Below are positions 31,222 through 57,400 of a stretch of DNA of 64,000 nucleotides, in pieces (positions within the stretch are counted from its first letter, which is position 1; each line of letters begins with the position of its first letter). The position numbers and the translations under genes are program-made. Origin of the DNA: Tubulanus polymorphus (taxonomy: Eukaryota; Animalia; Nemertea); assembly GCF_964204645.1 (NCBI RefSeq), contig NC_134030.1, forward strand, positions 9,761,222 through 9,825,221. The letters are read 5' to 3'. The notes beneath the pieces are model-generated. The model worked only from the letters and a program-made list of their open reading frames with translations, made no database searches and was not told the origin of the DNA.

Positions 31222-34200
31222 TTACTTTTTCTTCCTTCCAAGGGTCACTGAAAAAGAAAATCAGCCACAAGTAAATATTCAAGCGAATAATGCTGGTAAC
31301 TCGATAAAAGATTTGTATATTTTCTGCGGCCTGCTTACTCAAATGGTTTGATCCACCAGAAAATTGCTTCGTGCACGTCGCACCCGACACCGTGTATCCG
31401 TCTGGACAAGTCAGAATCGGTTCTGCAATAAAACCAATCAACTATTTAAAACCGATTAAAAAAACATATATATCGTCTACGAAATGTCAAAGACTTTTAT
31501 TTGACTTAAAAGATGACTACAGATGACTAGATAGAAAAATTAACCTTTGAGGGTTAAATTACCGGGTTCTGGAACTTACCCCCAGCAGAATTGATACAGT
31601 ACGGGGTGTCTTTTGCCCATTCCGATCCGGCCGCACATGTGACCTTTATACCGTCGGGTACACTACCGCCGAACATAGCCTCCAACGTCCCCAAACATCG
31701 TAACCCGTTTTGCACCGTTCCGTTTGGACATTGGCTTGTTTGGCCTTAAAGATTAGAACGATTAATTTTTCCGTTCATTTCATTTCAATAAAGAAAGATT
31801 TAAGTATTAAGATAAAAAAGACTATCATCCACTCGCAAACCTCTGACTATTCCGCCGTAATTAGAATCACATCAAAGTATAGCAAAGGCTTTACGAAAAA
31901 AATACCAGTGCATTTTGAGCTGTACTTACTCGCACCAAGAGACCCGCTAGAATGCGTCGATGAACCGCCAGACTGGACCCCGCCCTGTTCCGTAGCTTTC
32001 TGCATGCACAATGAGTCCGACGACATTGAAAATCCATCCGGACACGTTAGGACCGGTTCTGCAAACACGTCCCGAATATAACGTTTACAATGGTGGCCGA
32101 TTCGAGCCGCATACGTATCTTTCCATCCCCCACGAGAACGCTCAAAAAATTCTAACCGTCCAAAAACAAATCTAACCGTCCAAAAACAAATCTAACTGCC
32201 AAAAAAACAAAGCGCGCAGAAATGAAATTGTTTGCTTTTGATCGGTTTATAATGGAACACCGGCACCTACCAGATGGCGCCACATAACACTGGGTCATTC
32301 GTAGTGAAAATCGGTCCATTTTCAATGAAAGTGGAACGTGATTTTTAGGCTTCCAAGTTCGCCAATTTTTAAACAAGTCATTGAATGCATATATAAGATT
32401 CGCGGGGTGTGGTATTGATTTTGCTAAAAATCTATTTACTTATGAGAAACGTTGAATCGAATGTAATTGAAATTGAGAATGAACTGTAACCCAGTGCCAC
32501 TAACGACACCTGGCGGAATCCTCGCTGCTGACACAAGAAGCGTTGCCATTGATTTTGCGTTTTGCAAAAAAAACGGTTTTTTTTCACATTTTCTGGGAAA
32601 ATGGAAAAATGTGGATGTGGCTCGAATCAGCTAGTTTACAGAACGTTGCAGCTTGAAAATTCATTATAACGCAAAAGATATCGCGCAAGCTCTTTATTCA
32701 CACTCACTCACCCCCGGCATGGTTGATGCAATACGGAGTGTCTTTCACCCATTCCGATCCGGCCGCACATGTGACCTTTATACCGTCGGGTACACTACCG
32801 TTGAACATAGTCTCCAACGTTCCCAAACATAGTAACCCATTTCGCACCGTAACCTGTTTTCTACCGGCTCGACACGGGCTTGATTGGCCTTTAAAAGATG
32901 TAAACGATACATGTTTCTATTCAGCTTATTTCGAAACGAAAGAATCGGATCGAAGAAAAGGAATTTTAGAATCTTCGAATTCTATATACATATAGAATAT
33001 GAGGCAATATCGATCATCTCTACCGGTAATCACTAAACCAACTGATCGTCACTGCTTATTATATCAACGAATACGAAGACTTGAAAAATGAATTTGTACC
33101 AAGAGATCCACCAGAATGCATCGCGGAGCCTCCAGACTGGACACTGCCCTGTTCCGTGACTTTCTGCATACATGATGAGCTACCAATCTGTGAGTATCCT
33201 TCGGGACAAGTGAGGATCGGTTCTGCAAATAGAACACCAAGCAAAGCATCTGAGGCCGGTTCCTATAGTCGAGACTTAATAGCATAAGTTGTCATAAATC
33301 TGAAGACTGAGCTGACGTTTTTCTAGATTAGCAACGTCATATCCTACTATGGTAATCTTAGAGTGGTCTTAAAGTCTAAGCGACGACTATGGAAACGGTC
33401 CAAGCAGAATAACGAAGCTTGAAATGCATCGTAAGGAAAAAATATCGCATGGTTTTACGCTCACTCACCCCCTGCCGAATTGATGCAATAAGGTGTCTGC
33501 TCCACCAATTTTGTGCCGGCCGGACATGTGACCTTCGCGCCCTTGACCGCCAATTTTTCCAAACAATAACGCCCTGCTTGTACCATGTCCGCTGCACAGT
33601 GATGAGTTTGACCTTTGATATTGAAAATAGTTACTTAAGAGTTCTACTACATTCTCTTATGTAACTTAATGCGTTATTTAAGGGGTTCTGCGTTCGAGTC
33701 GATGTGCACTACGTCATCAGCCGTTTAAAAAGTAGCAATTTCAATTGTGAATTTCGGATGTGATGGATTTTAGAGATGATGTGCACCACGTCATCAATAT
33801 ATCGGGGCTACATTGGTTGATATATTGAAATCCGAAATAACCATCTTGATCCTTATGATTTATATTTAATTTATATATTACTTATCGTTTGTTTTCTTGT
33901 TCATCGGGGATTCAATGGCTATTAGATATTGGATTTACATGTTTCCAAGGTTATTTTGCAAACTATCCATTTTAAATCGATATCGTTTCAACATAACTTC
34001 ACCTGGTTTAACGAACGTTCTAGTCATATGTTTCACGTATCCTTCCATTGAGTTGAATTGGGTGAAATATTCCACTAACCAACTTGCGCTCCACCTTTCG
34101 CTCCCAGACAGAATGCGGAAGAAGCCGAATTTTTTGGCTTTGAGTTTGAAGAAATACGGTTTCATCTGGTGTTGCACAGGCGTTGGAGGGCTGTAGTACC

Positions 34201-37200
34201 CGACGACAACGATGCTTCTGTCGAAACCATCTCGTAGTCTAAAATGGAGAATAACTGGTTACAATCTCAGCTGGAAGTTGTTAAAAATTCAAATAATCAA
34301 AGCACACAGCCCAGGGAATCGGGAAACAGTGCAACAGAGAAATACAGAATCAGACATGTTCAATCCCGAAACCACGTTTCTCGTTTTACGTAAACGCACG
34401 TGACCAGGGAAACGCTCGTAAGCATTGATATTTGATTCCGTGTTTCTGCGTTTGCTGCCTGTTATCCTGTGCCGGGTTCGTTGGGCTTAAGATTATCACA
34501 TCGAATCTTACGTACTCGATATTGGAGGCCATTTTCCATTGGTTGACGTAATCGGGTTGACCAGGTTCCCGCCTCAACTGCATCAACTGCATCACGTAGA
34601 AATGCTTCTTCGTTTCGTCGGTAAACTCGAGCTTCACGTTCGGGCTCGATTTCATTCCTGATGAAAATGGTGACCACTATCAATTAACACTTTGTTAACA
34701 TGATACACCAAAAACAAATACGAACGGGACTTTGATTTCATTTTGATACTATGCACTAACAATGGGATACTGGGGCCGTAATCACGAAGCACCCGTAATC
34801 CCACGTGTCACGTAACTCTGCCCGTAAGTTCGCCCGTATATCTTACGTGACACGTAACATACGGGTGCTTCCTGAATACGGTCCCTCGCAACACCAGATG
34901 GCACTACAAAACACTAGCTTAAATTGTTGTAAATAGTGTATATATATTATTAATAACTTTGTTATATTATATCAAGACAAGCTTATATTTTCTGTCGAAC
35001 GTAAATATTGTATACTTTACAGTCTCCCTCCATGTACCACAGAAAAGATTGTAGTGTAATAAAATCTTTATCCTTATCCTTATCCGTAGTGAAAATTGGT
35101 TCATTTTCAATGAAATTTGCACCTGAATTTTGGGCTTCCAAATCCGAAAATTATCGAACGATTAATCGGATAGATATAACATTGACATTCTTACTCAGTG
35201 TATGGTATAGATTTTACTGAAAATTGATTTACTAATCGAAATAGTTCACTCGAATTTAAATGAAATGTAGAAGAAATTGAAGTGCGGTAGCCTAGTGCCA
35301 CTAGCGATCACCGAATCCTCGCTTCCCTCGGTAGCCTTGCCGGTATTCCATTGATAGCTTTTCTAATATGAATAGTTTGATTACGACTTTCGCGTACTAC
35401 ACTGACCTGTGATAATTACATACATCCGTGTGTACTTTGGCCCTAATCGGAATAACTGGACGAGGAATTGCAGGAATTGCACGGCGATTTGGAATTCGCC
35501 TTCACCGACCGATGCATCGACCATGAAAATCATATCCATTCGCATTTCCAGCATCAAACCTGTTATAAAATCAAGTGGATTGAACGAGGGATATGTGTTA
35601 CGTTACGTTGTTAAGAAGACAATAAGGAAAATGATAAACAATAAGCATAGAAAAGTTACCGGTAAATTCGAACTGAGCTTCGCTTGGCGCCAACGATTGC
35701 ATCATTTGTGCTGACGTGCTGACGCTGCTTATCACCTCGAAATTTGTAACCTTTTTCAAGAATTCCGAATCTACGCTTTGTCCAATGGGGACGATGTATC
35801 CTCGCGCGTTGTTTCGACTCAAAGTGTTTTTGTAAGTTTCGGAGAACAACGTTTTGAACTGCGGTTTATCTTGTTTGTCCGGGTTGAAGGCCCCGATCAG
35901 AATCGTAATTACACCAGCCGATGGCTCTGGTCGTTTGAATTGCCTTAAATGAATATGTAATCACCTGAATTTTACTTCAAATTATGATTTCTGTATTAGT
36001 ATTAGTATTTGAAAATAACTCAATCGCGAGACATGTTGCGCCATTAGTGAATTCAATCGCAGCAATCGATGGCAGGCGAGGATCCACCAGGTTCGCTAGT
36101 AGTCGCTCTGTCTTGCGCGATTGATTTCATCTTCATTTCAAATGAAACTGAATGGATTTTTTCTTAAATGAATCAATAATTAATGAAAACAATACCGATA
36201 TCTGAGAAAGAAAAATGACGAAGATAATATATAGATTCGGGAACCTCAAAATTCATATCAAAGTTCATGGAAAATGAACTAATTTTTACAACGTAAGACT
36301 GAGTGCTCGTCCCGCCATCTGGTGGCCAGTTCCCCATTCAAAGGCCCTTTTTACCAGCACAATCGGAACAGATTAGCAATTTGGATTATGTAGCCCATTA
36401 GTTTCATTTAATAACCGGGTATGTTGGTTGATGTGTAAGGAAACGTACTTGGAATTAATCAAATTGATTGCAGTTTTCACCAGTGACGTGTAGTCCGGTT
36501 TGTTGCCAGTGTACTTAATATTCTCAATCGACGTGACGTAACCCGTGATGTCATCCGCCGTCGGAGACTGCTGCTTTTCAGCCCGCGGGAATCTAGACGT
36601 TAAAACCTTTTCGGAAACACCTGTGACGGAATAATCAAGAATCATACGAGCAAGGCAATAAGCGAGGTAGAAAAAATAGCGACCTCCTTCATACGCAGAT
36701 GACTGGAAGGTCAGTTTGTACGGGCTACTTCATCAAGGCGAGTTCGATTAGTCTCTGCCTTAACCGGAATTCTCTTCTCGCCGACCAGAATACGCTCCAT
36801 ACACCTTTCCGTAATATCATCAATCTGTTAACATGGCATAACGTGGCTGATTTGGGCCATTTTTTCTGTATAGGCACGATGACAAATTTTTAGACAAATG
36901 TTTTCTGGCGCAAGAACTCAAAAAGGTTTCCAAACGAAAAAAAAACCTTTTTGTGAGAATTCTCGCGCGAGAAAACAAAAAAGGACCAGCGAGAAAAGTT
37001 TTCTATCGTGCCTAATGCCGTACAGAAAACAATTTTAGTATCTTAGTATGGGCCAAATTAACCACATGTCTAACCTGGTATGTCTAAGTCCGGTAATCCG
37101 GCATAGCCATTCATAAAATGGAATACGTTCATTCGAAACCAGACCAACTCGCTATTCTGCGTGAAAAACTCGATCACGATAGCATTCGATATGGATATAT

Positions 37201-40200
37201 TGAATTTCATTCTTTAATGATTAGGTTCACGTTTACCTGTGATGAAGACAAATATCCGTGTATTTCGTGGTAACTGTTTTATAGTTCGTAAAAAGCCGAT
37301 CAGCATAGTTTTCGCTTTCTTGAAACCATCCAGTCCAGTTTTTCTCGAGGCGTCGACGAATAATATGAAATCTAGCGGTTTATCGACAGCAGCTACAGCG
37401 AGATATTAAGAAACAAATACGTAATGTACATTATGTAGATCGCGTTAGAAGTCGTCATTTCGGAAATCGTTCCGGGGCTTTTTCAGCGAATGATTCCGAA
37501 GGCGCAGTTTAAACTCAAATTGAGACGTATTACAGTGCAGCCGCGTGTGTCAACAAAATGGTGTCGAATCCGTTCAAATTTTCAGACAAAAAGAGGGCTA
37601 CTTTGATGGTTAACAAGGTTTCATCTTGAGCGCGAGTTTCCACTACCATAGCGCGGGTTACCTGGTGAAGCCACTATACACTAGCGAAAGCCCGTACTTT
37701 ACAATAACATTACAGTTACCCTTCAAACTATTGTCCTATTTGTCTTCACGTTTGCAACGTAGACAACCAGATCGGTTTCGCCGTTACGTAGTTTGGCGAT
37801 ATCTATCCGAATCCTTTGCTCGTTTTCCGTGTATAAAAGAAACGTTTTATTCCGAACGGAATGTTCACATACCTCCTGAGGGATATGGAATTCCGACATT
37901 ATTTGCATGTAGATTTCGTAGTCCCGTTTCTTTTAGGGCTCCTACTAAGAGAAGAGAATGACAGCAAATTGAACAAATTGAACTACGAGACCTAGCTATG
38001 CTCACTGGCTTACTCGTGGACATACATCAAGTTTATTTAGTTTGTAAGTTCGTGGTTTTATAATAGAAGACATTGGTTGATTTGCTTCTTCACTGAAAAT
38101 ATAAGTTTGGTGGACTAAATATTAGATAGGATGAAGGAAACGAAAAAATATGTCCTTCTCTTACAGAGCTTGTATCATCAGGAAGGTGAATAACTAAGAA
38201 TACTAATATTTCCGCTCACCTGGTTTTCTTCCAGTTGGTGCCCCTCCAGTTGGTGCCTTTCCAGGTGGTTTCACTCCTGTTGGTGTCTCTCCAGACGGTG
38301 TCTCTCCGGATGGTATCTCTCCATGTGGATTCCCTCCAGTTGGTGTCTCTCCAGATGGCGTCTCTCCAGCTGGATTCCCTCCATTTGGTGTCTCTCCATG
38401 TGGATTCCCTCCAGTTGGTGTCTCTCCAGATGGCGTCTCTCCAGCTGGATTCCCTCCATTTGGTGTCTCTCCATGTGGATTCCCTCCAGTTGGTGCCTCT
38501 CCAGATGGCGTCTCTCCAGCTGGATTCCCTCCGTTTGGTGTCTCTCCAGATGGTGTCTCTCCAGGTGGATTCCCTCCAGTTGGTGTCTCTCCGGATGGTG
38601 TCTCCCCATGCGGATTCCCTCCAGTTGGTGTCTCTCCAGATGGTATCTCTCCATGTGGATTCCCTCCAGTTGGTGCCTCTCCAGATGGCGTCTCTCCAGC
38701 TGGATTCCCTCCGTTTGGTGTCTCTCCAGATGGTGTCTCTCCAGGTGGATTCCCTCCAGTTGGTGTCTTTCCATGTGGATTCCCTCCAGTTGGTGCCTCT
38801 CCAGATGGCGTCTCTCCAGGTGGATTCCCTCCAGTTGGTGTCTCTCCGGATGGTGTCTCCCCATGCGGATTCCCTCCAGTTGGTGTCTCTCCGGATGGTA
38901 TCTCTCCATGTGGATTCCCTCCAGTTGGTGTCTCTCCAGATGGTGTCTCTCCAGGTGGATTCCCTCCAGTTGGTGTCTTTCCATGTGGATTCCCTCCAGT
39001 TGGTGCCTCTCCAGATGGCGTCTCTCCAGCTGGATTCCCTCCATTTGGTGTCTCTCCATGTGGATTCCCTCCAGTTGGTGTCTCTCCAGATGGCGTCTCT
39101 CCAGCTGGATTCCCTCCATTTGGTGTCTCTCCATGTGGATTCCCTCCAGTTGGTGTCTCTCCAGATGGTGTCTCTCCAGGTGGATTCCCTCCAGTTGGTG
39201 TCTCTCCGGATGGTGTCTCCCCATGCGGATTCCCTCCAGTTGGTGTCTCTCCAGATGGTATCTCTCCAGCTGGATTCCCTCCGTTTGGTGTCTCTCCATG
39301 TGGATTCCCTCCAGTTGGTGTCTCTCCAGATGGTGTCTCTCCAGGTGGATTCCCTCCAGTTGGTGTCTCTCCGGATGGTGTCTCTCCATGTGGATTCCCT
39401 CCAGTTGGTGTCTCTCCAGATGGTGTCTCTCCAGGTGGATTCCCTCCAGTTGGTGTCTCTCCGGATGGTGTCTCCCCATGCGGATTCCCTCCAGTTGGTG
39501 TCTCTCCAGATGGTATCTCTCCATGTGGATTCCCTCCAGTTGGTGTCTCTCCAGATGGTGTCTCTCCATGTGGATTCCCTCCAGTTGGTGTCTCTCCGGA
39601 TGGTGTCTCTCCAGGTGGATTCCCTCCAGTTGGTGTCTCTCCGGATGGTGTCTCTCCAGGTGGATTCCCTCCAGTTGGTGTCTCTCCGGATGGTGTCTCC
39701 CCATGCGGATTCCCTCCAGTTGGTGTCTCTCCAGATGGTATCTCTCCATGTGGATTCCCTCCAGTTGGTGTCTCTCCAGATGGTGTCTCTCCAGGTGGAT
39801 TCCCTCCAGTTGGTGTCTCTCCGGATGGTGTCTCCCCATGCGGATTCCCTCCAGTTGGTGTCTCTCCAGATGGTATCTCTCCATGTGGATTCCCTCCAGT
39901 TGGTGTCTCTCCAGATGGTGTCTCTCCAGGTGGATTCCCTCCAGTTGGTGCCTCTCCAGATGGTGTCTCTCCAGGTGGATTCCCTCCAGTTGGTGTCTTT
40001 CCATGTGGATTCCCTCCAGTTGGTGCCTCTCCAGATGGCGTCTCTCCAGCTGGATTCCCTCCATTTGGTGTCTCTCCATGTGGATTCCCTCCAGTTGGTG
40101 TCTCTCCAGCTGGATTCCCTCCATTTGGTGTCTCTCCATGTGGATTCCCTCCAGTTGGTGCCTCTCCAGATGGCGTCTCTCCAGCTGGATTCCCTCCGTT

Positions 40201-43200
40201 TGGTGTCTCTCCATGTGGATTCCCTCCAGTTGGTGTCTCTCCAGATGGTGTCTCTCCAGGTGGATTCCCTCCAGTTGGTGTCTCTCCGGATGGTGTCTCC
40301 CCATGCGGATTCCCTCCAGTTGGTCTCTCTCCAGATGGTATCTCTCCAGCTGGATTCCCTCCGTTTGGTGTCTCTCCATGTGGATTCTCTCCAGTTGGTG
40401 TCTCTCCAGATGGTGTCTCTCCAGGTGGATTCCCTCCAGTTGGTGTCTCTCCGGATGGTGTCTCTCCATGTGGATTCCCTCCAGTTGGTGTCTCTCCAGA
40501 TGGTGTCTCTCCAGGTGGATTCCCTCCAGTTGGTGTCTCTCCGGATGGTGTCTCCCCATGCGGATTCCCTCCAGTTGGTGTCTCTCCAGATGGTATCTCT
40601 CCATGTGGATTCCCTCCAGTTGGTGTCTCTCCAGATGGTGTCTCTCCAGGTGGATTCCCTCCAGTTGGTGTCTCTCCAGATGGTGTCTCTCCAGGTGGAT
40701 TCCCTCCAGTTGGTGTCTCTCCAGATGGTGTCTCTCCAGGTGGATTCCCTCCAGTTGGTGTCTCTCCAGATGGCGTCTCCCCATGCGGATTCCCTCCAGT
40801 TGGTGTCTCTCCAGATGGTATCTCTCCATGTGGATTCCCTCCAGTTGGTGTCTCTCCGGATGGTGTCTCTCCAGGTGGATTCCCTCCAGTTGGTGTCTCT
40901 CCAGATGGTGTCTCTCCAGGTGGATTCCCTCCAGTTGGTGCCTCTCCATGCGGATTCCCTCCAGTTGGCGCCTCTCCAGATGGCGTCTCTCCAGTTGGAT
41001 TCCCTCCATTTGGTGTCTCTCCATGTGGATTCCCTCCAGTTGGTGTCTCTCCAGATGGTGTCTCTCCAGGTGGATTCCCTCCAGTTTGTGTCTCTCCGGA
41101 TGGTGTCTCCCCATGCGGATTCCCTCCAGTTGGTGTCTCTCCAGATGGTATCTCTCCATGTGGATTCCCTCCAGTTGGTGTCTCTCCAGATGGTGTCTCT
41201 CCAGGTGGATTCCCTCCAGTTGGTGCTTCTCCAGATGGTATCTCTCCATGTGGATTCCCTCCAGTTGGTGTCTCTCCGGATGGTGTCTCTCCATGTGGAT
41301 TCCCTCCAGCTGGATTCCCTCCAGTTGGTGTCTCTCCATGCGGATTCCCTCCAGTTGGCGCCTCTCCAGATGGCGTCTCTCCAGTTGGATTCCCTCCAGT
41401 TGGTGTCTCTCCGGATGGTGTCTCTCCAGGTTGATTCCCTCCAGTTGGTGTCTCTCCAGGTGGATTCCCTCCAGATGGTGTCTCTCCAGTTGGTGTCTCT
41501 CCGGAAGATTTCTCTTTTGTTGGTTTCTCTCCAGACTGAGTGTCTCTGTTGGATGGCCCCCCTTCAGCTGGTTTCCCTCCGGTTGGCTTTTGTTTACCTG
41601 GCGTCTCCTCGCTCGATTTCTCTTCACTGGAATTTTCTTCACCCGATTTCCGTCGACTCGTAATTGACATGATCATTTTTCGGACCGAAATGAATTTGAT
41701 AATGTTGTATTTCATCAGCCATCCCGGAATTCTAGCCCTCCCCAATGGAACACGAGCAAATTTGAATTTTTCCTTAACGAGTTTAGAAAAATATGGTATC
41801 ATTTGCTTTGACATCGTCTCAGCAGGATTGTAACGGCCGACGAATACGATGGCTCTCTTAGGGACATTTCGAGGTCTGTAAGTGAACATAAATGAATGAT
41901 TTCATCTGCACTGAAAATTCGAAGATTTGTCCTCACTCCATGGCGGGACAATAAGGGACGACGTGCATGGTTATATATCGCAGCCGATTCGTGCGTAGCG
42001 TAAAACGATGATATACGCACGTCGAAAAGATTTTTTTTTTAATATCGTACTTTGAAGATGTATATTTTTATTCGAATCGGCTAAGAAGATAATGCACAAC
42101 GTCCACGATAAGCCGCCATACTTACTGAATGTCGGTAGCCGTTTTCAATTGGGTGACGTAGTCGGGTCGTCCAACCTCGTACTTCAAGCTTGCCAACTGG
42201 GTTAGATAAGATTGCTTGTCCTTTTCATCGGTAAACTCTAGTTTTACGTTGGGGCTCGATTTGATTCCTGTTAAGATGGTGATGGTGCACAAGTGATAAC
42301 AGAAGTTAGTGATTCCTGGTTAGATGGTAATGATGGAATATTTTACGGAAATTTTAGCAGAGAGGGCCAAGTGCAATGTTTTCCCAGATAACTGCTTTAT
42401 ATAACGATGAAAAATGCATTCATAAAAGTTTATGGACTACATACAGCAATTACCAACAGATTGATATCGCTATAAAAAAATCGAGAATGGAATGGGGTCA
42501 AGACTACCTAAACCTTCCGCCTTGGATCCGACCTGGGCCCTGGTGACCACTGAAATCTACTCACCTGTAATTATAACGTAAAGCCGCGCGTATTTGGGTC
42601 CCAATCTAAATGTTCGGACAACGATTTTCACGAAGTTCACGGCATCTCGGAATTTTCGTTCGTCGACCGATGCGTCGATCAGGAAAATCAAATCCATGTG
42701 TATCTTCACTCTTGGTAGAGCTGGTTATCAATGTTGCGTTAGGAAATTTGAAAAAGAAATTAAAAACAGCGGATAAAAAACGAGAAAAAAAGATTTTTCG
42801 TTCGCTTGAAAAAATGTGGACCGGTTTTCAGAGCTGCCATCTGTTCCTAATTTTCAGTATTTGTTACTATTTCATTATGAAAAACTGATTTATTTAATGC
42901 GTACAGAAATATGAAAGATGTTACTGAAGGTCTGACTGTTGATTACTGATCAACTTTAACATTTCCTTCGATATTTCAACGGAATGTTACTGAAAAGAAT
43001 TCAATTTGTTACTGATAGCACATTTTTGGAGGTTGGCGGCCCCGAGTTTTGCTCGAGCAGTCGACTAACAGATCTAGACGCTGTTAGTAATGAGTTACAG
43101 ATAGGGAAAAGAAACCCCTAAGAAATCGAAAAGTGTGCTTCAACGTGGACAAACAATACACAGCTCCCGTGCAGATGTAGTGTCCGTTTTGGGTTTGGTA

Positions 43201-46200
43201 TTGATTAAAGTGGAGACAAGGTCTGGAAACTAGAAAATGCCTGGGCCCATTGTCTAGAGACGGTACGATACGTCCCCCCCCCCAAAAAAAGTCTGTATAC
43301 AAATCCTGAATTCATCGAAAACGAAAATCTTTATCAATGATTTAGATTCTGAATCAACCGCAAGTGCGTGAGTCGATAAAACTGATACATACTGCAAGGC
43401 AATGTCATTGATAGTTCGGTTCATACCTTGATTTGACTTTTCTCTACTTATTTCTTCACTCGATTTCTTTCTTTTCGATTTATTCCTATTCGCTTTTCGT
43501 TTGTTTGTTTTTTCTTTGCTTGGTTTTTCTTCACTACTTGAACTCTCTTCACTTGAACTTTCTTCACTTGAATTTTCTTCATTCGAATTACTTGTTTGGT
43601 CTGCGACGTAAAATTAAAAAGGTTGCCAACTGAAGTTCATTTTCTACGCGAGTTTACCGTAAAGTTGATTAGCTCAAAACAGTTGAAGATACGTAGATAA
43701 GAAAAGTTACCGGTATTGAGTGACGTTGATCGTAGAAATTTTCGAATTTCACTGCTAGGAATAACCCGGAAATCTGTGATCGTTCTCAAGGATTTTGAAT
43801 CGACGCTGACTCCCATTGGCACGATGTACCCTCGTACGTTTTTCAGACCCAAGGTTTTAAAGAACGTCATAAAATATGGTTTATCTTCGTCTTCCAGGTT
43901 GAAAGCGCCGATCAGAATGGTCGATACACTCACCGGTGGTTCTGGTCGTTGGAACTGCCTTAAATATAAAGAATAAGCTCCACACTTTATACGACTGATC
44001 GTCCTTTCTATACTGATAACTCAAAATCGCTAAATCACAAGGCGATTTCGTGCTGCCATTGGTGAATGCCTGGGGCTGGTTTTATAGGCTGGTAATCTGA
44101 ACCCTGGGTTTAACTCAATGAAATTATATCGCATTTACCCGCGGATTTAAGATACTACCAGTCTATAAAACTAGGGCCTGGTCATGGCACATCGAAATGG
44201 TCACATTAACCGATGCCCGTTATCGTAATTCAAGTATTTTAACGTACTTCGATGTGATAAAATTGACTGCAGTTTTCACCAGTAATGTGTAACCCGGTTT
44301 GTCACCCGTGTACTCAACAGTTTCGATAGATTTGACAAAACGTGTGACGTCATCCGCAGTCGGAGACCGTTCATCAGTTGGTGGAAATCTTAGCTGTATA
44401 ACTTGATTCGTAACACCTGCAAAAAATCAAATTCAGAATTTACACGAATCATTGATATTTGAATTGATGATTATTTTATGAATATTCAACTTGATTGGCA
44501 TCCTCGTGCAGGAGGAATTCGAACCTCGCTACTTCGATGATGTCATTCTAAGCCAATCGTAAATCCTGTTTTATTCTAACCCGGGTTTTTCCATCTACAG
44601 TTATACAACAAGCAATCTGATTGGTGCCGCAAGTTTTCTTGCATGTACCCACGCACCCGGTCAAGTGAGGCGAGGGTTCGTACCGTGGTTCGTTCGTGGG
44701 GTTCGTTCGTGGCTGAATGTAGCGATGCCAGAAGGTTCTAATCCCTGCCGAATGAGAATGCTCGATCGGTCACTGAAGCCCCAAGTATAATGATTATCAA
44801 ATGGCTAAGTATTGTTTATTGTATGTCATTGAATGTCCAGAAAATGACGCTATGGAATAACTAACTTTTCAAATCAAAATGTTTATCAGTTAGGCCTTCT
44901 GCAAGGGGACTTAACAGAAATATATGTTGTATATTGATGGGCGCTTAACAACAATATATGTATTACATAAGAATATCGCAACTTTGATCAAATAAGGCGA
45001 GTCGTGAACCGCAGAATCGAGTAATCATTCCGTCCCAATGAAAGCCATTTGAAAGGCCGACTTCAGGGTTCACTCACCTGTTATAAAAACGAATATCCGT
45101 ATATTTTGCGGCACCTGGGTTCCGCGACGTAACCAGTCGACTAAGATCGTTTTCGCTCGCTTGAAATAAATCGGACCGGTTTTGCTGGAGCCGTCGATGA
45201 ATATGATGAAGTCTAGACGCCGCTTACCATGCTGAACTATAACAAATAACCAAATAACGAATGGCGTGTACCTAGATAGGCCTCGATTGCAATGAATGTT
45301 GTAAGATGCACACGCCAAATGGGCATCATTTTAGCCAGGTGTCCTATGAGTACTCCCCAGGAACAAATTCGAAAATTGAATGCAAAGAGAGGAACTATTT
45401 CACTTCCTCTGATTTTGGGGTGAAATCTATGGTGGCTGGTAACGGCCACGTGCATCATTTTTCTATGCCCTCGATTACTTATAAAGACCGAAACTTATAA
45501 AGTAAAGACGAAGTTTTCATTTTTGCTATCGGATGAACATCTTTCTTCGAAAAAAAAGTTGAAGAAAATTCGGCGAAAAAGTGATCGTAGGATACATTTC
45601 TATCAGAAAACAACCACGCGATAAGTCAGCGGAACAGTAACTCATACGTTGGCGATTACTTTTTTGCGTGGAAAAGTGAGTCGTCCTTGACTTATGTCCC
45701 CAAGACGCCACGGTAATCGGATTTTTTTTGCAAAACGAAAATTTTCTGCGAGAAGAATTTCCAAAACAAATGATTTATCTCAATGACTTGAATCCAAAAA
45801 TTCCACAAGAAATCATTTATCTCCCAGGACTCTTTGTTACTAAACAGCCACCATAAATGGCCAATAGCATGCAAACCACAGAACCACAGAAGTCTTTTCT
45901 ACTTACTGTCTATACTCGGCAAATGAACTGCAAAATTTAGAAAAAAAATGAATATCAAAACGTAGTCCTTATTTGGTCCATGGACCTACGTGCGTTGTCC
46001 TAATTTTTACAATGACGACAAAGTAGAACAAGCTTACTTACCAGAATAGCCCTTCGCGTATTCGGTCAGTCTTGGGAAACTCGATGGAAACTGAATTTGA
46101 TTTCCTAAATATTGAGAGATTTAAAATGTTCAGTCGTGACTGCACGGTAAATTCTCAACCGCAACAAATTTGGAAGCGAGCGTGAAATCAACAAAAAGAA

Positions 46201-48557
46201 ATATTTTTCAAAAGATTTTGTTAAGTAAGTGACGTGCAAACGATGATGATATCGTACCAATTTTGGGAAGATTCTTCGCGATCTGGATTCCGATAGATTG
46301 TGGATCTTTCTGCGATATTATCGGAACCTGCGATGGCAGCGCACCTGGTTCTATGGTCGCCGAGAAAGGTATGACATAAACGGAGACGTATTTCGTCAGC
46401 GTCAACCAGACGAAGTCGAACATCATTTTCGTCTGCGTGGTCGTACCCTTTAAAACGCCGCCAAAATATAGAACCATTCGAGGATTGGCGTCGGGCGAGC
46501 GAAAAAAGTAACCGGTTCTCAGGACGTAATTTATGTACGCTAGTCGAAGATCCATTTTCATAGGCGCATACTGATGATAGCTTCTGCCGATAGCTTTCAG
46601 TAAAGCCGGTACCCGTTTTGGTCTTCTCAAAACAGCGTGAGTTACCTTTGCGCCCCTGCCATTCAAAACTAATACCATCAGGTAGATTATCTTGGTTTGT
46701 CGTAACATTTGAGGGAGTGCAGCTAGGAGGGTTCGCTGGGTTTTATCGATAGTCGGTTTCGAAGATTCGTCGATGACGACCATTAGTTTCAACGCAGAGC
46801 TTGATTTCTTTTCATGCGATTTTCCCTTTTTGCGTCGCTCTTTGCTCGAAGAACCAGAACTTTCTTCGCTTGATGTTCCCGTATTGCAGCCCATTCTCCC
46901 TTTACGGTATCGGCGTCGTTGGTCCATTGAATCAGGAATGTCTTGCTCGTCGCTCATTTGACCATGCCTTAAAATCGTCGATGAAAAAAATGTTCATGCG
47001 TAACGTGTTTGACTGTACTATACGGAAGCGCCCTGGCGACACGATTTAAAGAAAATATAATTTTTCTAATGAGTTTTTTCTGACCACGAAATCATTTACG
47101 ATTAATAAAAACGGTTTCTTCGATTTAAATCGGGTTAAAAACTCGCCAACGAAGGTTTTGCCGATTTCGCGACGAGTTATCGATGCGAATACTCGAATTT
47201 AGAATCGACAAAACCTTTTACTGATCGTAAATGAATTTGCGTTGAGTCAGGAACTCAACATTAAATCTGAAAAAAAAGATTCTATAATCGAAAATAATTT
47301 ACGTTGAGATATGACTCGAATTTCTATTTTTCCTAAATGATCTCCACGGGATGCTTCCGCACTTTACATTCAAATATACTGAGATAAGTTCGATTCCATA
47401 TTTTTGTTCCCTTAATTATCAAGTATTACAAAATACAGAATCAGCACGTACATGTACCTACAACGATATCACTAGCGTTATTAGGCCGTTATCTTTTTAA
47501 GTTATAAGAATTATTGAATCGGACGTACAAGTTGGGGATTATAGATGGCTTAAACATTGTGAGACGACTTAAGCAAGTTTGACTTTTAGTAACGACGCAG
47601 CATTAGACCGTTTTTCTATTTTTTAGATAACGGATCAGCCACCGAACATTTCCTATTTCTAGGTGTGAAAAAATACAATTTCTAGGGGTGAAAAAACTTC
47701 ATTTTCATTTTTCCCACCGCCCCCGTATTTTCAAGCATAGATATGAAAATAGAAATAAACATTTATAATTTTTTCCACTGTCACATCATCCTTTGACATT
47801 ACACACAAAAAATCAAAGTGGACGATGGTGTTCTAATGGATATTTTGTCGGTTTCGTTCAGTAAATAGCCTGACTTGCAAAAAGGCGGCATAGTAATAAT
47901 ATAGGCCATAAATAGACAATATTCGGGTATCATTATCCAAAACGACCTCCAAAATAAAGCAATCTGTTTCCAAATTCTATTTTCTAATTCACCCCCTCCC
48001 CAATCATGTCAAGTCTATCAAACCAGTAATTCAACTTACAATAAAAACGGGCTTACTCCCATAAAAATATTTCTAGCTATATTGAAATAAGAATATTTGT
48101 TACCATCGGTTTGATATCGAGTTTTTCTTAACAAAATAAATATTCAAGATATCAACTCAGATTTAATGATTCATATTTCAAGTTATGAGTTGCCTTACCG
48201 TTCATTGTGTCGCGAGATGACCTTCTTTATCTTCAGACATTTTACGCTGCCGAAATCTTTAAAATTTGAAGAAAAATAGTGGAAAAAATGTTCACGTGAA
48301 TCTCTCGAAAGCGACTAAACAGCTTAGAAGTTTATGACAGTCGTCTCTTCGTATATTGCTGAATAGCGCGTGAGATATAACTCCGGATATCAATAATAGA
48401 CTATAAGGCCTTGTATTCCATAGATAAATTTGCATAAAAAGATACTAGCTGGCAGAATTCATTTTTCAATTGTTCAAAAGATGATTTATGCGCGTAACTT
48501 ACTTGAAAGATTGACAGCGATGTACAGAATAAGGATCGCCAATGTCCAAACCCTCAT
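31222..48557 (-). CDS. Giant secreted multi-VWA protein with Gly/Pro/Thr/Glu/His pentapeptide repeat and C-terminal Cys-rich modules (26 coding exons, ~2564 aa)
   Basis: Coding exons: 48503-48557, 48199-48256, 47222-47266, 46258-46967, 46042-46104, 45078-45236, 44248-44416, 43711-43958, 43427-43600, 42565-42720, 42126-42267, 38220-41875, 37873-37941, 37237-37392, 36449-36620, 35660-35943, 35407-35559, 34516-34657, 34003-34238, 33469-33612, 33100-33222, 32712-32888, 31930-32058, 31580-31744, 31339-31422, 31222-31247. All introns GT-AG with matching phases; total 7695 nt, open to TAA. N-terminus MRVWTLAILILYIAVNLSNFGSVKC is signal-peptide-like. VWA first strands: LMVVIDESSK, LDFIIFIDGSSK, MDLIFLIDASVD, LDFILFVDASRK, MDMIFMVDASVG. 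Weakest junction is the GTAAAA donor at 47221. Confidence 0.85.
32090..32632. mobile_element. Intronic MITE (gccgattcgagccgcat / atgtggctcgaatcagc ends) holding a 20-bp tandem repeat and a GGGGTACC-MITE fragment
   Basis: Inverted ends; tctaaccgtccaaaaacaaa about 3 times at 32151-32208; related ends at 60234-60392. Confidence 0.5.
34761..35352 (+). mobile_element. Degenerate GGGGTACC-TIR MITE with a nested palindromic MITE (34771-34885)
   Basis: aatgggatac / ggtattccatt ends; nested ggggccgtaatcacgaagcacccgta...tacgggtgcttcctgaatacggtccc. Confidence 0.55.
36045..36338 (-). mobile_element. GGGGTACC-TIR MITE copy (reverse), intronic
   Basis: ggcaggcgaggatccaccaggttcgctagtag...gccatctggtggccagttccccatt. 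Confidence 0.75.
38220..41875 (-). CDS. Exon 12 of the multi-VWA gene (3656 nt): end of the third VWA domain plus pentapeptide repeat
   Basis: Acceptor cacttacag| (phase 2), donor CCAG|gtgagc (phase 1). The 5' part (RAIVFVGRYNP...MIPYF) is paralogous to exon 34003-34238 (RSIVVVGYYSP...MKPYF), which fixes the GETPT/GGNPH frame as the real one. Confidence 0.9.
38232..41505 (-). repeat. Coding tandem repeat, 15-nt unit with 45-nt and 135-nt higher-order blocks
   Basis: + strand units tggtgtctctccaga / tggattccctccagt / tggtgtctctccatg over about 3.3 kb; encodes GETPS, GETPT, GGNPH, GGNPP, GGNPA, GEIPS, GEAPT. Confidence 0.98.
44498..44760. mobile_element. Second copy of the B-box MITE
   Basis: acaagcaatctgattggtgccgcaagtttt and cgatgccagaaggttctaatccctgccga match the reverse complement of the 20003-20350 element. 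Confidence 0.6.
46258..46967 (-). CDS. Exon 4 of the multi-VWA gene: basic/Ser-rich segment plus an intronless VWA-like domain
   Basis: ORF 46208-46957 contains SSEESSGSSSKERRKKGK then LKLMVVIDESSK...RMVLYFGG...VSVYVIPFS; acceptor ttttaag| at 46967, donor G|gtacga at 46258. Confidence 0.8.
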
Positions 48558-49847: not shown

Positions 49848-51546
49848 TTAATTGATTGTCGAAGAACTACTTTCTCGCCTATTTGAGACGTTAATCAACG
49901 TGCTCTCCAGATTTTTCCATCGAGGATCGTCGACCATGTTCATTCGACTGATCGTTTTCGCCTCGTCCAACATTTTCTGTTTTCGGGCGTACAAAAGCCT
50001 GTTCAGGTTTTCGTTCGCTTTCACCATCATCCTCGACGGCAACGTCTTCGTCAAACGCACGATCACTTCGTCGTCGCATATAGGATGTCGTTTGTCGCGG
50101 ACCGTCGGATATCTTCTCGACGAAGATTCTCGGCTGCGAGGAATGTCGTGATCGACCTTCTCCTTTTCGAACGCGTCACATGTATCGCAACTATCGCCGA
50201 TCGAAGTATCTTTGAAAACGCCATCGTCGTGCAGCTGCGGTCGAAGGTCTCCAGCCCTTTCCCGGTCAGTTCTTTTGCTAGCGATCAACCATTCGTGAAT
50301 TTCTTTCGACATATCGGTTTCCGCGGTGTGAAAAACGTTGTCGCAATTTTCTTCGATTTTTTCATGCTCTGGCGGTGCCTGATTACTAGTTCCATTGTAC
50401 ATTTTTCCAACCCTACACCGACCGGCCTCTTTTTCTGGAATGGCTGGGAATTCGGCCGCTATTTGTATCTTAGTTAGGCTCGCCAAATCCTTCATGCTAC
50501 AGAACGATAACCGTCGCAACTTCGATAAAGGATCGTCTATTTCGCCGATGATTTCATCGTTACTTAAAGTCTCCCCGCGGGTGGTGGGAACGATATCCTT
50601 AGCGCGGTCATTGAATGCGGCCAGCTTTTTCTTTCTTTGAACTTGAAGCGAATTGGCGAATATCCCGAAAGCTTTTGTTTTGATCAACGGTAACCGGAAG
50701 CGATTTTGTCCAGCCCCGGCTGAATCTCTTTTCTCACAAATGGGTCGGTCCGGTGTCACGTCTGTAAGACACTCGACAGATTTATCACCTCTCCTATTTT
50801 CTATATCTTTCCAGATGTTACCTGTGGAGAAAAAAGAAAAAATACGACTCAAAAAGTAATACTTTTTGGAAATCGAACGAGTGTTTGAGAAATCTGTAGC
50901 CGGTATGCGAACTTTCGAACACTGTGGTATACACACGAAGAAAAAATACAAGTTGCTCGCATTCGTTTCCATTTTGTTTCTACAACCATATATTGTCGGG
51001 ATCAATCGCCAACTTAAAGAATATCCGTTAACTTGCCTGCAAATCTAAGTCTGAGATCTTGGTCGAATATTTGATTCATGAAGAATTGTCGTTGAAACCA
51101 GTTCATCGTGTTCTCGCGGCGCCTCTTTTCGATGCGAATCTGGCGCAGTTTTTTGTCGAGTTCCCTTTCTTGCCACGGGTTGCTGTTGAGGATAACGGTG
51201 GATATGGACGCCTTGCCGGCTGGCGTACGCTCCATGGGAACCTTGATTCCGCGCTCGAACGAGCCGGACAGCTCGGCCTCGAGGTCCGGTGATTCCAATA
51301 CACAGCGCTTTCTTTCTATTCGGTGTCTACCTGTAATAAGAATGTTTCTAGGAAATTGTTTTCGGATAGAAATGTCTCGATATTTGGGAACCCAAAATGC
51401 GAACAAAGTTGATCGTATGACATCTATGAAATTTTGTTGTACGAGTGACAGGGTGGAAAAAGTCATTTCAATTTATTTCTGCTCTGAAGTCAAAAAGGCT
51501 GAAAATACTGCTTCTTACCATTCAGGTAGGCTCCGAAAGCGGCCAT
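49848..51546 (-). CDS. Uncharacterised coiled-coil protein, 431 aa, 3 coding exons; likely ciliary/flagellar
   Basis: Exons 51519-51546 (MAAFGAYLN), 51037-51330 and 49848-50821 join in phase 1/1, the second intron being GC-AG. Coiled-coil-like NPWQERELDKKLRQIRIEKRRRENTMNWFQRQF; C-terminal DDPRWKNLESTL; minus-strand AATAAA at 49523-49528. Confidence 0.75.
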
Positions 51547-54484: not shown

Positions 54485-57400
54485 TTAAATCAACATTACG
54501 ACATTTACATCTGGCTCAATGCCTTCGTCAATTTTTGAATCGATTACGTTTCTCTGACGACCAGAATCATTTTCATTAAGTGTCAGGTTATTCAGTTCTT
54601 CGTATGGGCCACTTCTGGTTGAGTCGCCCCTTTGCACGGGATGTGTCGGTAGTTCGGACGCGTCCTCACTCGGCACGGGCGGTAACGCCGACGTCCGCCT
54701 ATCCGTACCGGAGACGCCCATTTTCGGGCGCCTTTTGCGTCCCGGTGAGTCTGATTTCCCGTTAATTTCGTCGGGCTTCAGGTAGTCGGACGACGCAGAC
54801 TCGCCGCCGGTAGCCGCCTGCTGGCCGTGCAAGTTGTGAATCTGCGAATACCGAGGCGGGCGCGGAGACTGGTCGTAGTCTACGTATAGAGGATCGTTCA
54901 CGTCCGGTGAGTCGCAACCACTGCTGCTGTCCGAACTGACGTCACGCGGTTCTAGATAATCCGGGTCGTATGCCTGACGTTTTAGATACGACGGTTGTTT
55001 GCCTTGGGGAGAGACGAGCGGACTCCTGCCGGGCAGCACTTGTCCCGGTACCGGTTTGAGTTTTTCGTATTTTCTTTCCTTAGCCGCTGCCTCTTCTAGC
55101 GAACTCAACGAAGTGTAATCCGTCTGTTGAGATATACCGTCACCTACGCGCGCGGTATGGATATCGGGACTGACGGAGGCGCCCTCTATTACTTGCAGAT
55201 ACGGCTGGTTGTGTATAGACGAACGAGGGGACGTAGAATTCGAATTCACGTCCGTGCTCCTCATGGAATCGTCGTGTTTCGCGTACGCGCCGTTCACTCG
55301 CCCGTTGGCGATAACGACCAGCGACGACTGACTGGTCCCTAAATCGGGCGCCATTTTCATATCACGTGGTACGCGTCTGAAGACGGTATAGTAGAATTTG
55401 TCGGATGTTCTCGTCAGGGCGATGAACCCTCCGAGAAACAGTGCGACGAGGAAAACGGTTACTACTATTCCAATTGTGAGATTTCGGGATGAATCGTCGG
55501 GCGAGCTTTGGCCAGACGGCCGTGACGTCATGACGAACATGGTCGTCTGGTAATCGTCGCCGATAGTTCGAAAAACCGAACACGATTCGTAATTGCAGAC
55601 GGGCAGTTTGATGCATATCGCGTAATACGTGTTCGGCGCCAATTCGAATAACGGGAACGTACGTCTTGCTACGTCGACGCCTCGCGCCACCGTTTCTACG
55701 GTACTTTTTCCAGCGTCGATGTTTCTCAAGTTGATATCCACGTCGGCGCCACCTATTGTACAATCCGAACGCCATTTGAGAACGGTACTGACGTTCGTGA
55801 TATTTGATGTGCTCAATTCGTACGGACGTAGGCGCTTGCAGTCGGCTGGGGACAGGGTTGGCAGAGTGGTCATTCTGGGCTCGGGTTCCGCCGACGGTGA
55901 GCTAATTGGTCCCGTTGTGGTTGCCAAGGAAGGGCAGAACTGCGACAGATCCGTAGATTGAACGTCGAATGGCCTTTCGTTTTTCGGCACGTAGCACGCG
56001 GCTGCTGCGGCAAAAATGATACTTCGACTAGCGAACGTATCCTTCAAATCGTTCAGCGTGCAATCGCACAAAAACTTATTTCCTTCGAGATTAATTTGCC
56101 ACAAACTCGACAAAGGTCGCACCACGCCCGGATTTATCGTGCTCAGTTCGTTGTTAGATAGGTCTATGCGCTGCAACGCTGTCAAGCCGTCGAACGCCCG
56201 AATGTCGATAGTTTTCGTACCCATCCGCGACAATGAAAACGTCACTAAACCAGTCAACGTGGTAAAATCGCTCGGCAACAGTTTGACGATCCTATTCCCC
56301 GATATATCCAAACTGCGCAAAGCACTCGACCCTTGAACCGATCTTATCAGCGATTTCGGGTCTATTTTGTTGTCGGAAAGGTCTAGCACGGATAGATGGC
56401 TACAGAATGAGAAAATGCCTCCGAGTAAAATTTTGATAGCGTTATGACTAATGACGAGTTCTTGTAGCCTAGGTGTACTGGACGTGCATAGGTCATCGGG
56501 TAATGTCGTGAGCGCGTTGAAGCTTACATCCAACGTGACTAGATATCGGAGTTTACCGACGAAATCTGGAAAACAATACAAAACATTCTAACGATTAACA
56601 TCTTAAAGTTGGTGAAAGGGACACTTGAATTTAATTTTGAACTCAAAACACTGCGATATCAGGCCCGTATCAACTGGGGGTAGCGAACGAACCCATAGAA
56701 TTTTTTAAGTGCCCTTCAAAAAGTCAGTATGAAAAAAATCGGGTCAAGAACTTTCGAAATTTGGATTAAACTTTTATGTTTTCTTTGGAAAACGAAAACT
56801 AATCAATTCTCAAATTATCTATTCAGGTAGTCCCGAAAAATCGCGTTTAGGATCCGTTCTTTTTTCGATAGGAAAAAGCCCCTTTTCGTTGTGAAAAAGG
56901 GCCCTTTTCTTGAGATAGAATTGCCCCTCAAAAAAGCTAGGCACCGGTCTGGATGTATCATAGCCGGCTTCTTTAACTCAAACGTTTTATTTATCTTTTT
57001 TTTTTCTCCTAGGTTAGTCTGAGCATACTTGGTATTTTTCACTGATCTCTGGTGGCTTTATCACCGTATTACGCCTAGAAACTTACCTAACGAAGGGATT
57101 GAGTTGTTGGACAAGTTTAACGCGACAACGTGTCCACCGATTCCAGCGGGGACGCTTGTCAGACGACGGCTACTGCAGTCTATCGTATTGTCCGTCGGGC
57201 ACACGCACTCGGGCGGACAGGCCGCCGAAGCCCGATGAGCGACAACTGTGTATGCGACGATCCACAATACTGTACAACTCGTCTGAAATTAAAAGAAACC
57301 TTATCAGAAACGTGTTAGAAACTCAATTGGATGTGTAGTATGTGTTGACGTGAATCGAAGTTTAAGCAATTCCTATAATTCCAAAGTGATGAGGAAATTC

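Follow-up and report, generated by a model that had tools for sequence, protein, structure and literature searches.

The molluscan shell proteins BMSP and Pif are VWA-containing biomaterial proteins of invertebrates. Aggrecan contains a Ser-Gly-rich region to which chondroitin sulfate is attached, and the pentapeptide elastomers include elastin (VPGVG), spider flagelliform silk (GPGGX) and the flanks of mussel preCol-P. PTMP1 of the mussel byssus is a secreted VWA biomaterial protein from a lophotrochozoan (PMC4754843). Nemerteans are described in a passage of PMC6410017 as covered with thick mucus; published proteomes of nemertean mucus list mostly unidentifiable proteins, with neither VWA proteins nor mucins mentioned in the main text of the two reports (PMC12846013, PMC11768458), and in an Antarctic heteronemertean mucins and VWF are reported among the genes upregulated in the proboscis (PMC9132205). 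Here we describe a locus on the minus strand of a 64,000-nucleotide stretch from the palaeonemertean Tubulanus polymorphus (assembly GCF_964204645.1, contig NC_134030.1, positions 9,761,222 to 9,825,221; this whole stretch is referred to as the window, and positions are counted from its first letter). On balance, and with a little over even confidence, we read the locus as a single large gene whose product would be a secreted, lineage-specific structural glycoprotein of an extracellular gel (mucus, tube lining or matrix).

The gene model was assembled from stop-free segments in the three frames, with donor and acceptor pairs scored for frame and a search for a bridging exon at the 5′ end; the two ends were read directly from the sequence. 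The model starts with an ATG at 48557 and ends in ...TLGRKKK and a TAA at 31224-31222, and its 23 exons give a coding sequence of 7,518 nucleotides (nt), corresponding to 2,505 amino acids (aa). All introns are GT-AG and between 91 and 1,231 nt in length, all junctions are in phase, and the final TAA is the sole in-frame stop. The encoded protein features, in order, a signal-peptide exon, a Ser/Glu and Lys/Arg block, a first VWA-like domain (VWA0), VWA-A1, an acidic and basic linker, VWA-B1 and a long pentapeptide repeat, followed by VWA-A2, VWA-B2, three modules of six cysteines and the ...GRKKK end. The original prediction had proposed a gene of 26 in-phase exons and about 2,560 aa: the rebuilt model reproduces the single in-phase open frame, its start, its GRKKK end and its domain order, with the lower exon and residue counts given above. 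The predicted signal peptide also agrees with the sequence of exon 1, whose hydrophobic leader reads as one.

The strongest internal support for the gene model is the paralogy between its duplicated units. VWA-A1 and A2, and likewise B1 and B2, are split by introns at matching positions into three exons (a, b and c) with phases 1, 2 and 1, the last of these following exon c; the acceptor of the very large exon 10 shares its position and phase with that of the B2 c exon. Each Cys module is made up of a phase 1-1 'a' exon with four cysteines and a 'b' exon with two. These common intron positions and phases cannot be chance. Pairwise comparison gives ratios of non-synonymous to synonymous substitution rates (dN/dS) of 0.21–0.37 across all nine pairs of paralogous exons, indicating that the duplicated units have evolved as coding sequence.

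At the 5′ end, exon 3 has just one good acceptor (46967), which requires phase 2, whereas the donor of exon 1 is in phase 1; a short exon 2 was therefore placed between them. Joining exon 1 straight to exon 3 was rejected, as the sole phase-compatible acceptor (46941) has no pyrimidine tract. Splice scoring finds the donor of exon 18 to be poor, and this is a weak point of the model. The sequence ATATATT lies about 50 nt upstream of the ATG and is a candidate TATA box as a sequence motif only; a short intron in the 5′ untranslated region would be equally possible there. The end of the upstream gene, which is on the same strand, is at 49848; this leaves about 1.3 kb for a promoter and fits exon 1 as the first coding exon. 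Directly upstream, at 49848-51466 on the minus strand, are two adjacent open frames of 385 and 150 aa, probably the last exons of that separate gene.

All database searches and structure predictions were run exon by exon. The a exons of VWA-B1 and B2 are matched by Pfam VWA over profile positions 1-43 only, with scores (20.5 and 18.9 bits, respectively) under the cut-off of 23.8. A profile of the five exon-a segments matches 29 sequences in the PDB, all of which are VWA domains: the top matches are the collagen VI alpha3 (4.6e-13) and alpha2 (2.2e-5) chains, followed by MIC2, vWF A1 and the integrin alpha1 I domain. Against these solved structures a beta1-alpha1-beta2 core with its D-x-S motif is recognisable. 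Elsewhere in the genome, the same profile also picks up a small number of distant VWA domains, two of which, each on a single exon, pass Pfam VWA over the whole model (6.5e-14 and 4.8e-10). When a profile of the same-genome domains that pass Pfam VWA is used as the reference in hhalign, exon c aligns with E 5.8e-5, exon b more weakly with E 0.014, and VWA0 with E 3.6e-4 over 137 columns, all collinearly. Language-model features from Atlas place VWA0 in the VWA family at 0.94. Taken together, and set against sub-threshold Pfam scores and PDB profile searches with exons b and c that gave no match, these results give moderate confidence in five VWA-like domains of a divergent subfamily, the number originally predicted.

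The D-x-S-x-S metal-ion-dependent adhesion site (MIDAS) is intact in none of the five domains, the second serine being missing in all of them (see table). In vWF A1 a motif of the type D-G-S-S-K/R takes the place of D-x-S-x-S, in what are structural, ligand-binding domains of the extracellular matrix (ECM), and the five domains described here resemble this non-metal, ligand-binding type, which is seen also in collagen VI. All five domains are free of cysteine and carry a net positive charge (+17, +9, +19, +8 and +8), summing to +61. This is in contrast with the net charge of −129 on the repeat (138 Glu versus 9 Lys/Arg), and the predicted combination of basic globular domains and an acidic midblock is borne out.

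The repeat consists of 1,100 aa in one unbroken register, with the pattern G-x-x-P-x in 217 of its 220 pentapeptides; a repeat of 1,090 aa had been predicted, and only its length needs correcting. Tandem Repeats Finder reports periods of 15, 45 and 135 nt over 38226-41547, with scores up to 3,809. The main units are GETPT and GETPS (49 each), GGNPH (38) and GGNPP (23), with GGNPA also among them, and the composition is accordingly simple: G 27%, P 22%, T 17%, E 12.5%, N 8%, S 6% and H 3.5%, with no Cys, Asp, Tyr, Trp or Phe. The 39 histidines are regularly spaced. Four further frames over the repeat, on both strands, are also open, and openness alone proves nothing; the frame is instead fixed by its continuity with VWA-B1 part c, by a consensus phase-1 donor at its end, and by a synonymous bias in the codons of Gly1 and Pro4, where the units show 24 synonymous and about 4 non-synonymous differences. 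The codons are highly uniform (GGA in 209 and CCA in 204 of the 220 units), indicating that the array is young or homogenised.

The repeat contains 113 Thr-Pro and 60 Pro-Ser-Gly-Glu motifs, with 184 threonines in all. By these motifs alone it looks like the attachment region of a mucin or proteoglycan; the Glu-flanked Ser-Gly is both a xylosyltransferase-type motif and an S-x-E motif of the Fam20C type. Since both motifs suit a mucin or proteoglycan, a glycosylated, hydrated spacer would be no less likely, and in our judgement more likely, than a bare block that coacervates. Patches combining Ser/Glu with Lys/Arg are found at the N-terminus, after A1 and after B1. S-x-E occurs 5 times in exon 3, 11 times in the linker and 67 times in exon 10 (a count that includes every SGE), and such clusters are candidate sites of Fam20C-type phosphorylation, as motifs only.

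With Pfam, the repeat gives only a sub-threshold, compositional match to Extensin_1 (37 bits against 105). Database matches to bacterial and fish proteins were rejected as unrelated, low-complexity look-alikes. No other locus of the 268-Mb genome carries a GETPS-type repeat, the next best being at most 38% identical. A 2,399-aa open frame at G000:C12:4173349-4177929 (minus strand) has a different repeat of the Gly/Pro/Thr type, 35–38% identical to the GETPS repeat, and is a further giant exon of low complexity in this genome.

The C-terminus has, as had been predicted, three modules of six cysteines (18 in all), with Ser/Gly-rich linkers between them. Pairing of these cysteines is probably within each module; two further, odd cysteines lie near the N-terminus. 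The three copies of part a are 53–81% identical. Pfam recognises none of the modules, and a PDB profile search with part a gave no match. Two weak, independent leads point to Sushi/CCP domains, namely the Atlas features of part a (0.89, Sushi/Sushi_2) and a match of the part b profile to the CCP protein Crry (E 0.026), while the spacing between the first and second cysteines is too short for Sushi. An AlphaFold2 (AF2) model of part a from three sequences has a predicted local distance difference test score (pLDDT) of 57.7; a Foldseek search of the PDB with it found nothing at E ≤ 0.001, and the weak top rows, with E above 1, are EGF-like domains.

Searches for relatives support the lineage-specific protein that had been predicted. 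VWA0 has no true match among 1.84 billion representative proteins; the sole hit, an arthropod-cuticle-like repeat protein, was rejected as a homologue, the resemblance being compositional and made up of 13 weak stretches. The non-repeat start of exon 10 has no homologue among proteins of 670-2,131 aa, and no protein in that size range contains either this start or the repeat. Nor does the rest of the 268-Mb genome contain a paralogue: the exons for VWA0, the A and B domains and the Cys modules have matches only among themselves, and by this measure the gene is a singleton.

The design of the gene is, on the other hand, not unique within its own genome. The combination of VWA domains with a low-complexity block recurs at loci on three further contigs (C5, C1 and C9) with several VWA domains, where the repeats are rich in Pro/Thr/Ser, Pro/Lys or Lys/Glu/Gly, and are accompanied by Cys hairpins of the CPxG type and, at one locus, by FN2-like exons. 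The large gene at G000:C1:29495000-29504999 (minus strand) has at least five VWA domains, two of them reaching about E 1e-23 with Pfam VWA, a 784-aa open exon of Pro/Lys-rich repeats of the GAPKPTKP type, and several C-P-x-G-x(6-8)-C hairpin modules that resemble part b of the Cys modules described here. At G000:C5:8772000-8781999 (minus strand) there are several divergent VWA exons, and outside the present gene nothing is more closely related to the A-type exon a than the first of them; a Pro/Ser/Thr/Lys block is also present, and the C-terminal repeat, (SGSGQMMS)n, ends in GCHGGCGK. At G000:C9:16180000-16189999 (minus strand), after a VWA exon come three exons that read by eye as fibronectin-type-II-like, a Lys/Cys-rich repeat and a repeat of the (GKPKEGKPEEKNKTAA)n type; this would be another modular secreted protein. 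Such genes would fit a secretory-material toolkit in a mucus-rich worm. The mucus of nemerteans has been studied almost only for its toxins; the present gene and the similar genes combining VWA, repeat and CPxG-Cys elements are concrete candidates for the polymers of its gel.

Table 1. Exons of the gene and position of the pentapeptide repeat in the window. Parts a, b and c are the three exons of a VWA-like domain; five-letter motifs in brackets are the residues at the MIDAS position.
Feature	Positions	Strand	Content	Basis or remark
Exon 1	48503..48557	-	ATG and 18-codon hydrophobic leader (MRVWTLAILILYIAVNLS); donor CAA/gtaagt, phase 1	Read from sequence; donor score
Exon 2 (tentative)	48199..48256	-	58 nt, enters in phase 1, leaves in phase 2; short basic peptide, one Cys	Best-scoring phase-compatible exon
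Exon 3	46258..46967	-	Ser/Glu and Lys/Arg block (TSSEESSGSSSKERRKKGK), then whole VWA0 (DESSK; charge of VWA0 +17)	
Exon 4	45078..45236	-	VWA-A1 part a, beta1-alpha1-beta2 (DGSSK)	Exon-a profile against PDB
Exon 5	44248..44416	-	VWA-A1 part b	56% identical to A2 part b, matching intron phases
Exon 6	43711..43958	-	VWA-A1 part c	Exon-c profile, hhalign E 5.8e-5, collinear
Exon 7	43427..43600	-	Linker: Ser/Glu run (11 S-x-E), then Lys/Arg run	Pfam: compositional sub-threshold matches only
Exon 8	42565..42720	-	VWA-B1 part a (DASVD)	Pfam VWA E 6.1e-4, 20.5 bits, profile positions 1-43
Exon 9	42126..42267	-	VWA-B1 part b	61% identical to B2 part b, boundaries matching
Exon 10	38220..41875	-	3,656 nt, one open frame: VWA-B1 part c, Ser/Glu-Lys block, repeat, short basic end	
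Repeat in exon 10	38233..41532	-	220 x 5 aa	
Exon 11	37237..37392	-	VWA-A2 part a (DASRK)	
Exon 12	36449..36620	-	VWA-A2 part b	
Exon 13	35660..35943	-	VWA-A2 part c	
Exon 14	35407..35559	-	VWA-B2 part a (DASVG)	Pfam VWA E 1.8e-3, 18.9 bits
Exon 15	34516..34657	-	VWA-B2 part b	
Exon 16	34003..34238	-	VWA-B2 part c	
Exon 17	33469..33612	-	Cys module 1 part a (4 Cys)	
Exon 18	33100..33222	-	Cys module 1 part b: 2-Cys CPxGY hairpin and Ser/Gly linker	Weak donor
Exon 19	32712..32888	-	Cys module 2 part a	Atlas features Sushi/CCP 0.89, lead only
Exon 20	31930..32058	-	Cys module 2 part b	
Exon 21	31580..31744	-	Cys module 3 part a	AF2 pLDDT 58; no significant Foldseek match
Exon 22	31339..31422	-	Cys module 3 part b	Pfam cEGF E 0.009, below cut-off
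Exon 23	31222..31247	-	Last 8 codons (…TLGRKKK) and TAA; acceptor ttctttttcag, phase 1	Read from sequence

In the structural glycoprotein that we favour, the Gly/Pro/Thr midblock would be extended and hydrated, probably with O-glycosylation on Thr-Pro, and the 60 Pro-Ser-Gly-Glu sites may bear glycosaminoglycan or phosphate. The basic VWA domains would act as non-covalent cross-linking nodes; possible ligands are the polyanionic midblocks of adjacent chains, other polyanions of the mucus, or collagens. The Cys modules and the two odd N-terminal cysteines would stabilise the molecule or link chains, and the outcome would be a viscoelastic network. Mucus of the epidermis or proboscis, the lining of a tube, or a matrix are all plausible sites for such a gel.

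Unlikely, in our judgement, though it accounts for several of the observations, is the alternative of an internal ECM protein of the basement membrane or connective tissue, comparable with collagen VI, the matrilins and SVEP1, with collagens as the ligands of the VWA domains and the repeat as no more than a flexible spacer between them. The best PDB matches of the exon-a profile are indeed collagen VI chains, the placing of VWA domains on both sides of a Gly/Pro-rich centre echoes collagen VI, and the weak Sushi/CCP leads of the Cys modules recall SVEP1. Against this, the centre is very acidic and Thr-rich and has a period of five rather than Gly-X-Y; no orthologue was detected outside the species, whereas core ECM proteins are usually conserved; and the repeat array is young and homogenised.

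Another alternative takes up the self-assembling block copolymer of the original prediction, here understood as unglycosylated. Coacervation between phospho-Ser/Glu and the acidic midblock on one side and the basic VWA domains and Lys/Arg runs on the other would give a glue, fibre or tube cross-linked by cysteines; the G-x-x-P-x array might, in addition, form a regular elastic structure like those of other pentapeptide elastomers. The segregation of charge between VWA domains and repeat suits this idea, as do the S-x-E-rich patches beside Lys/Arg runs, the strict register kept by all 220 units, the selection acting on Gly1 and Pro4, and the 39 regularly spaced histidines. However, the net charge is far from balanced, so that self-coacervation would need counter-ions or partners; the Thr-Pro and Ser-Gly-Glu motifs make glycosylation likely; and the repeat is without the Tyr/DOPA-type (3,4-dihydroxyphenylalanine) or hydrophobic residues typical of glues and elastomers. 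We consider an unglycosylated assembly of this kind quite improbable.

It is more doubtful still that the 220-unit array, whose Gly and Pro are invariant and under purifying selection and whose Glu and His recur periodically, takes up an undescribed regular fibrous or elastic conformation and, with the basic VWA nodes that have no MIDAS, makes a new self-assembling, pH- or metal-switchable material of nemertean mucus or tubes, the gene being part of a nemertean-specific toolkit of VWA-plus-block genes without counterpart in other phyla. The protein is of interest for biomaterials as an extreme, cleanly segmented polyelectrolyte, with its positive charge on five folded domains and its negative charge on an 1,100-residue repeat of period five.

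Several observations weigh against a secreted glycoprotein built on five VWA domains, and some of them touch the gene itself. No exon reaches the gathering threshold of Pfam VWA, with the a exons of A1 and A2, VWA0 and all b and c exons giving no match at all; nor did the PDB yield a match, either to profiles of exons b and c or to VWA0 as a single sequence. The AF2 model of VWA0, made without an alignment, is poor (pLDDT 36.5), and has only the beta-alpha-beta order. The link from the signal-peptide exon to exon 3 has as its sole support exon 2, the best candidate of the path search, and a start at the ATG at 46957, within exon 3, would remove the signal peptide. The three sequencing runs that contain the locus are contigs of genomic DNA, in which introns are covered as evenly as exons and there are no splice joints. 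A protein with exon 3 is missing from a collection of 15 billion proteins in which the RefSeq protein of the neighbouring gene is present; the locus is thus possibly unannotated or unsupported, and seems to be either unannotated or annotated very differently. Finally, glycosylation, phosphorylation and the proposed binding partners are read from motifs alone. A partial artefact, with two or more genes joined in the model (for example VWA0-A1-B1-repeat and A2-B2-Cys) or with a decaying or unexpressed gene whose repeat stays open as every frame of such repeats does, would explain the purely genomic runs, the missing public protein in a genome that has RefSeq models, the four further open frames of the repeat and the weakness of exon 2 and of the exon 18 donor, but we hold it to be the least probable of the alternatives, as no internal signal peptide was seen and no internal start was noted except the exon 3 ATG, which has no signal peptide, exons 11-23 have no initiator of their own, every junction keeps phase up to the only in-frame stop, dN/dS is below 0.4 in all duplicated exons, and the frame of the repeat is fixed by variation at Gly and Pro that is almost wholly synonymous.

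The surrounding DNA shows some further features. Short elements within intron 7 (42760-42959) and intron 4 (44560-44759) have a contig depth of about 11,000 in one run, compared with about 25 in the DNA around them; they are very high-copy repeats of the genome, and are possibly similar to miniature inverted-repeat transposable elements. Within exon 3, the contig of one DNA run differs from the assembly at 46626 and at 46832-46833, and the difference at 46626 is common to two further runs; this may be allelic variation. Further upstream, at 54485-56581 on the minus strand, a single large exon encodes a protein with leucine-rich repeats (LRR) followed by FN3-like and transmembrane parts, the latter two read by eye. 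It is 100% identical to LOC141907019, an uncharacterized protein of Tubulanus polymorphus, and its next best matches, at 27–35%, are chaoptin and Toll-like LRR proteins.

As described above, the protein shares features with several known systems. Collagen VI (alpha2 and alpha3) and the A1 and A3 domains of vWF provide the best sequence matches for the beta1-alpha1-beta2 segment, and like the present protein they have VWA domains in tandem arrays. In contrast with them, it has no triple helix, its period being five and not three, and no Kunitz or FN3 domains; its VWA-like domains are very divergent, with only exon a significant, and all five are Cys-free and basic. A collagen as such was rejected, since Gly recurs every five residues in 217 of 220 units rather than as Gly-X-Y and no Pfam Collagen match was found. 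SVEP1 and other proteins with Sushi and VWA domains are similar in combining VWA domains with small Cys modules, which are possibly CCP-like (leads only); they differ in the order and number of domains and in having EGF and pentraxin domains, and the modules here are negative for Pfam Sushi, with a spacing between the first two cysteines that is too short.

Other likenesses concern the repeat. As in the Pro/Thr/Ser (PTS) regions of mucins and in proteoglycans, a long Pro/Thr/Ser/Gly tandem repeat is encoded in one giant exon, between globular and Cys-rich flanks, and offers Thr-Pro sites and 60 acidic-flanked Ser-Gly sites, as motifs. The strict G-x-x-P-x register and the 12.5% of Glu are unusual for a mucin, and the link and lectin modules of the lecticans are absent; a gel-forming mucin was rejected, as neither VWD-C8-TIL nor a cystine knot (CTCK) was found on any exon in Pfam searches with E up to 1 or 10. 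The pentapeptide elastomers also repeat every five residues and keep Gly and Pro invariant along stretches of hundreds of residues, but here Pro is followed by x-Gly, so that the Pro-Gly turn is absent, and the sequence is strongly acidic and hydrophilic, with no hydrophobic residues.

PTMP1, BMSP and Pif, finally, are secreted proteins of an extracellular material in which VWA domains occur together with low-complexity or charged blocks, as appears to be the case here. No sequence relation to them was detected, and Pfam brought up neither a chitin-binding nor any other domain in the exons; the protein is also much larger, and its 1,100-aa pentapeptide block has no counterpart among them. Kinship to PTMP1, BMSP or Pif is not demonstrable from these comparisons. 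The architecture is best read as a new, orphan one, to be filed as a lineage-restricted variant of the VWA-plus-low-complexity material and matrix proteins, to which, among known systems, its design appears nearest.

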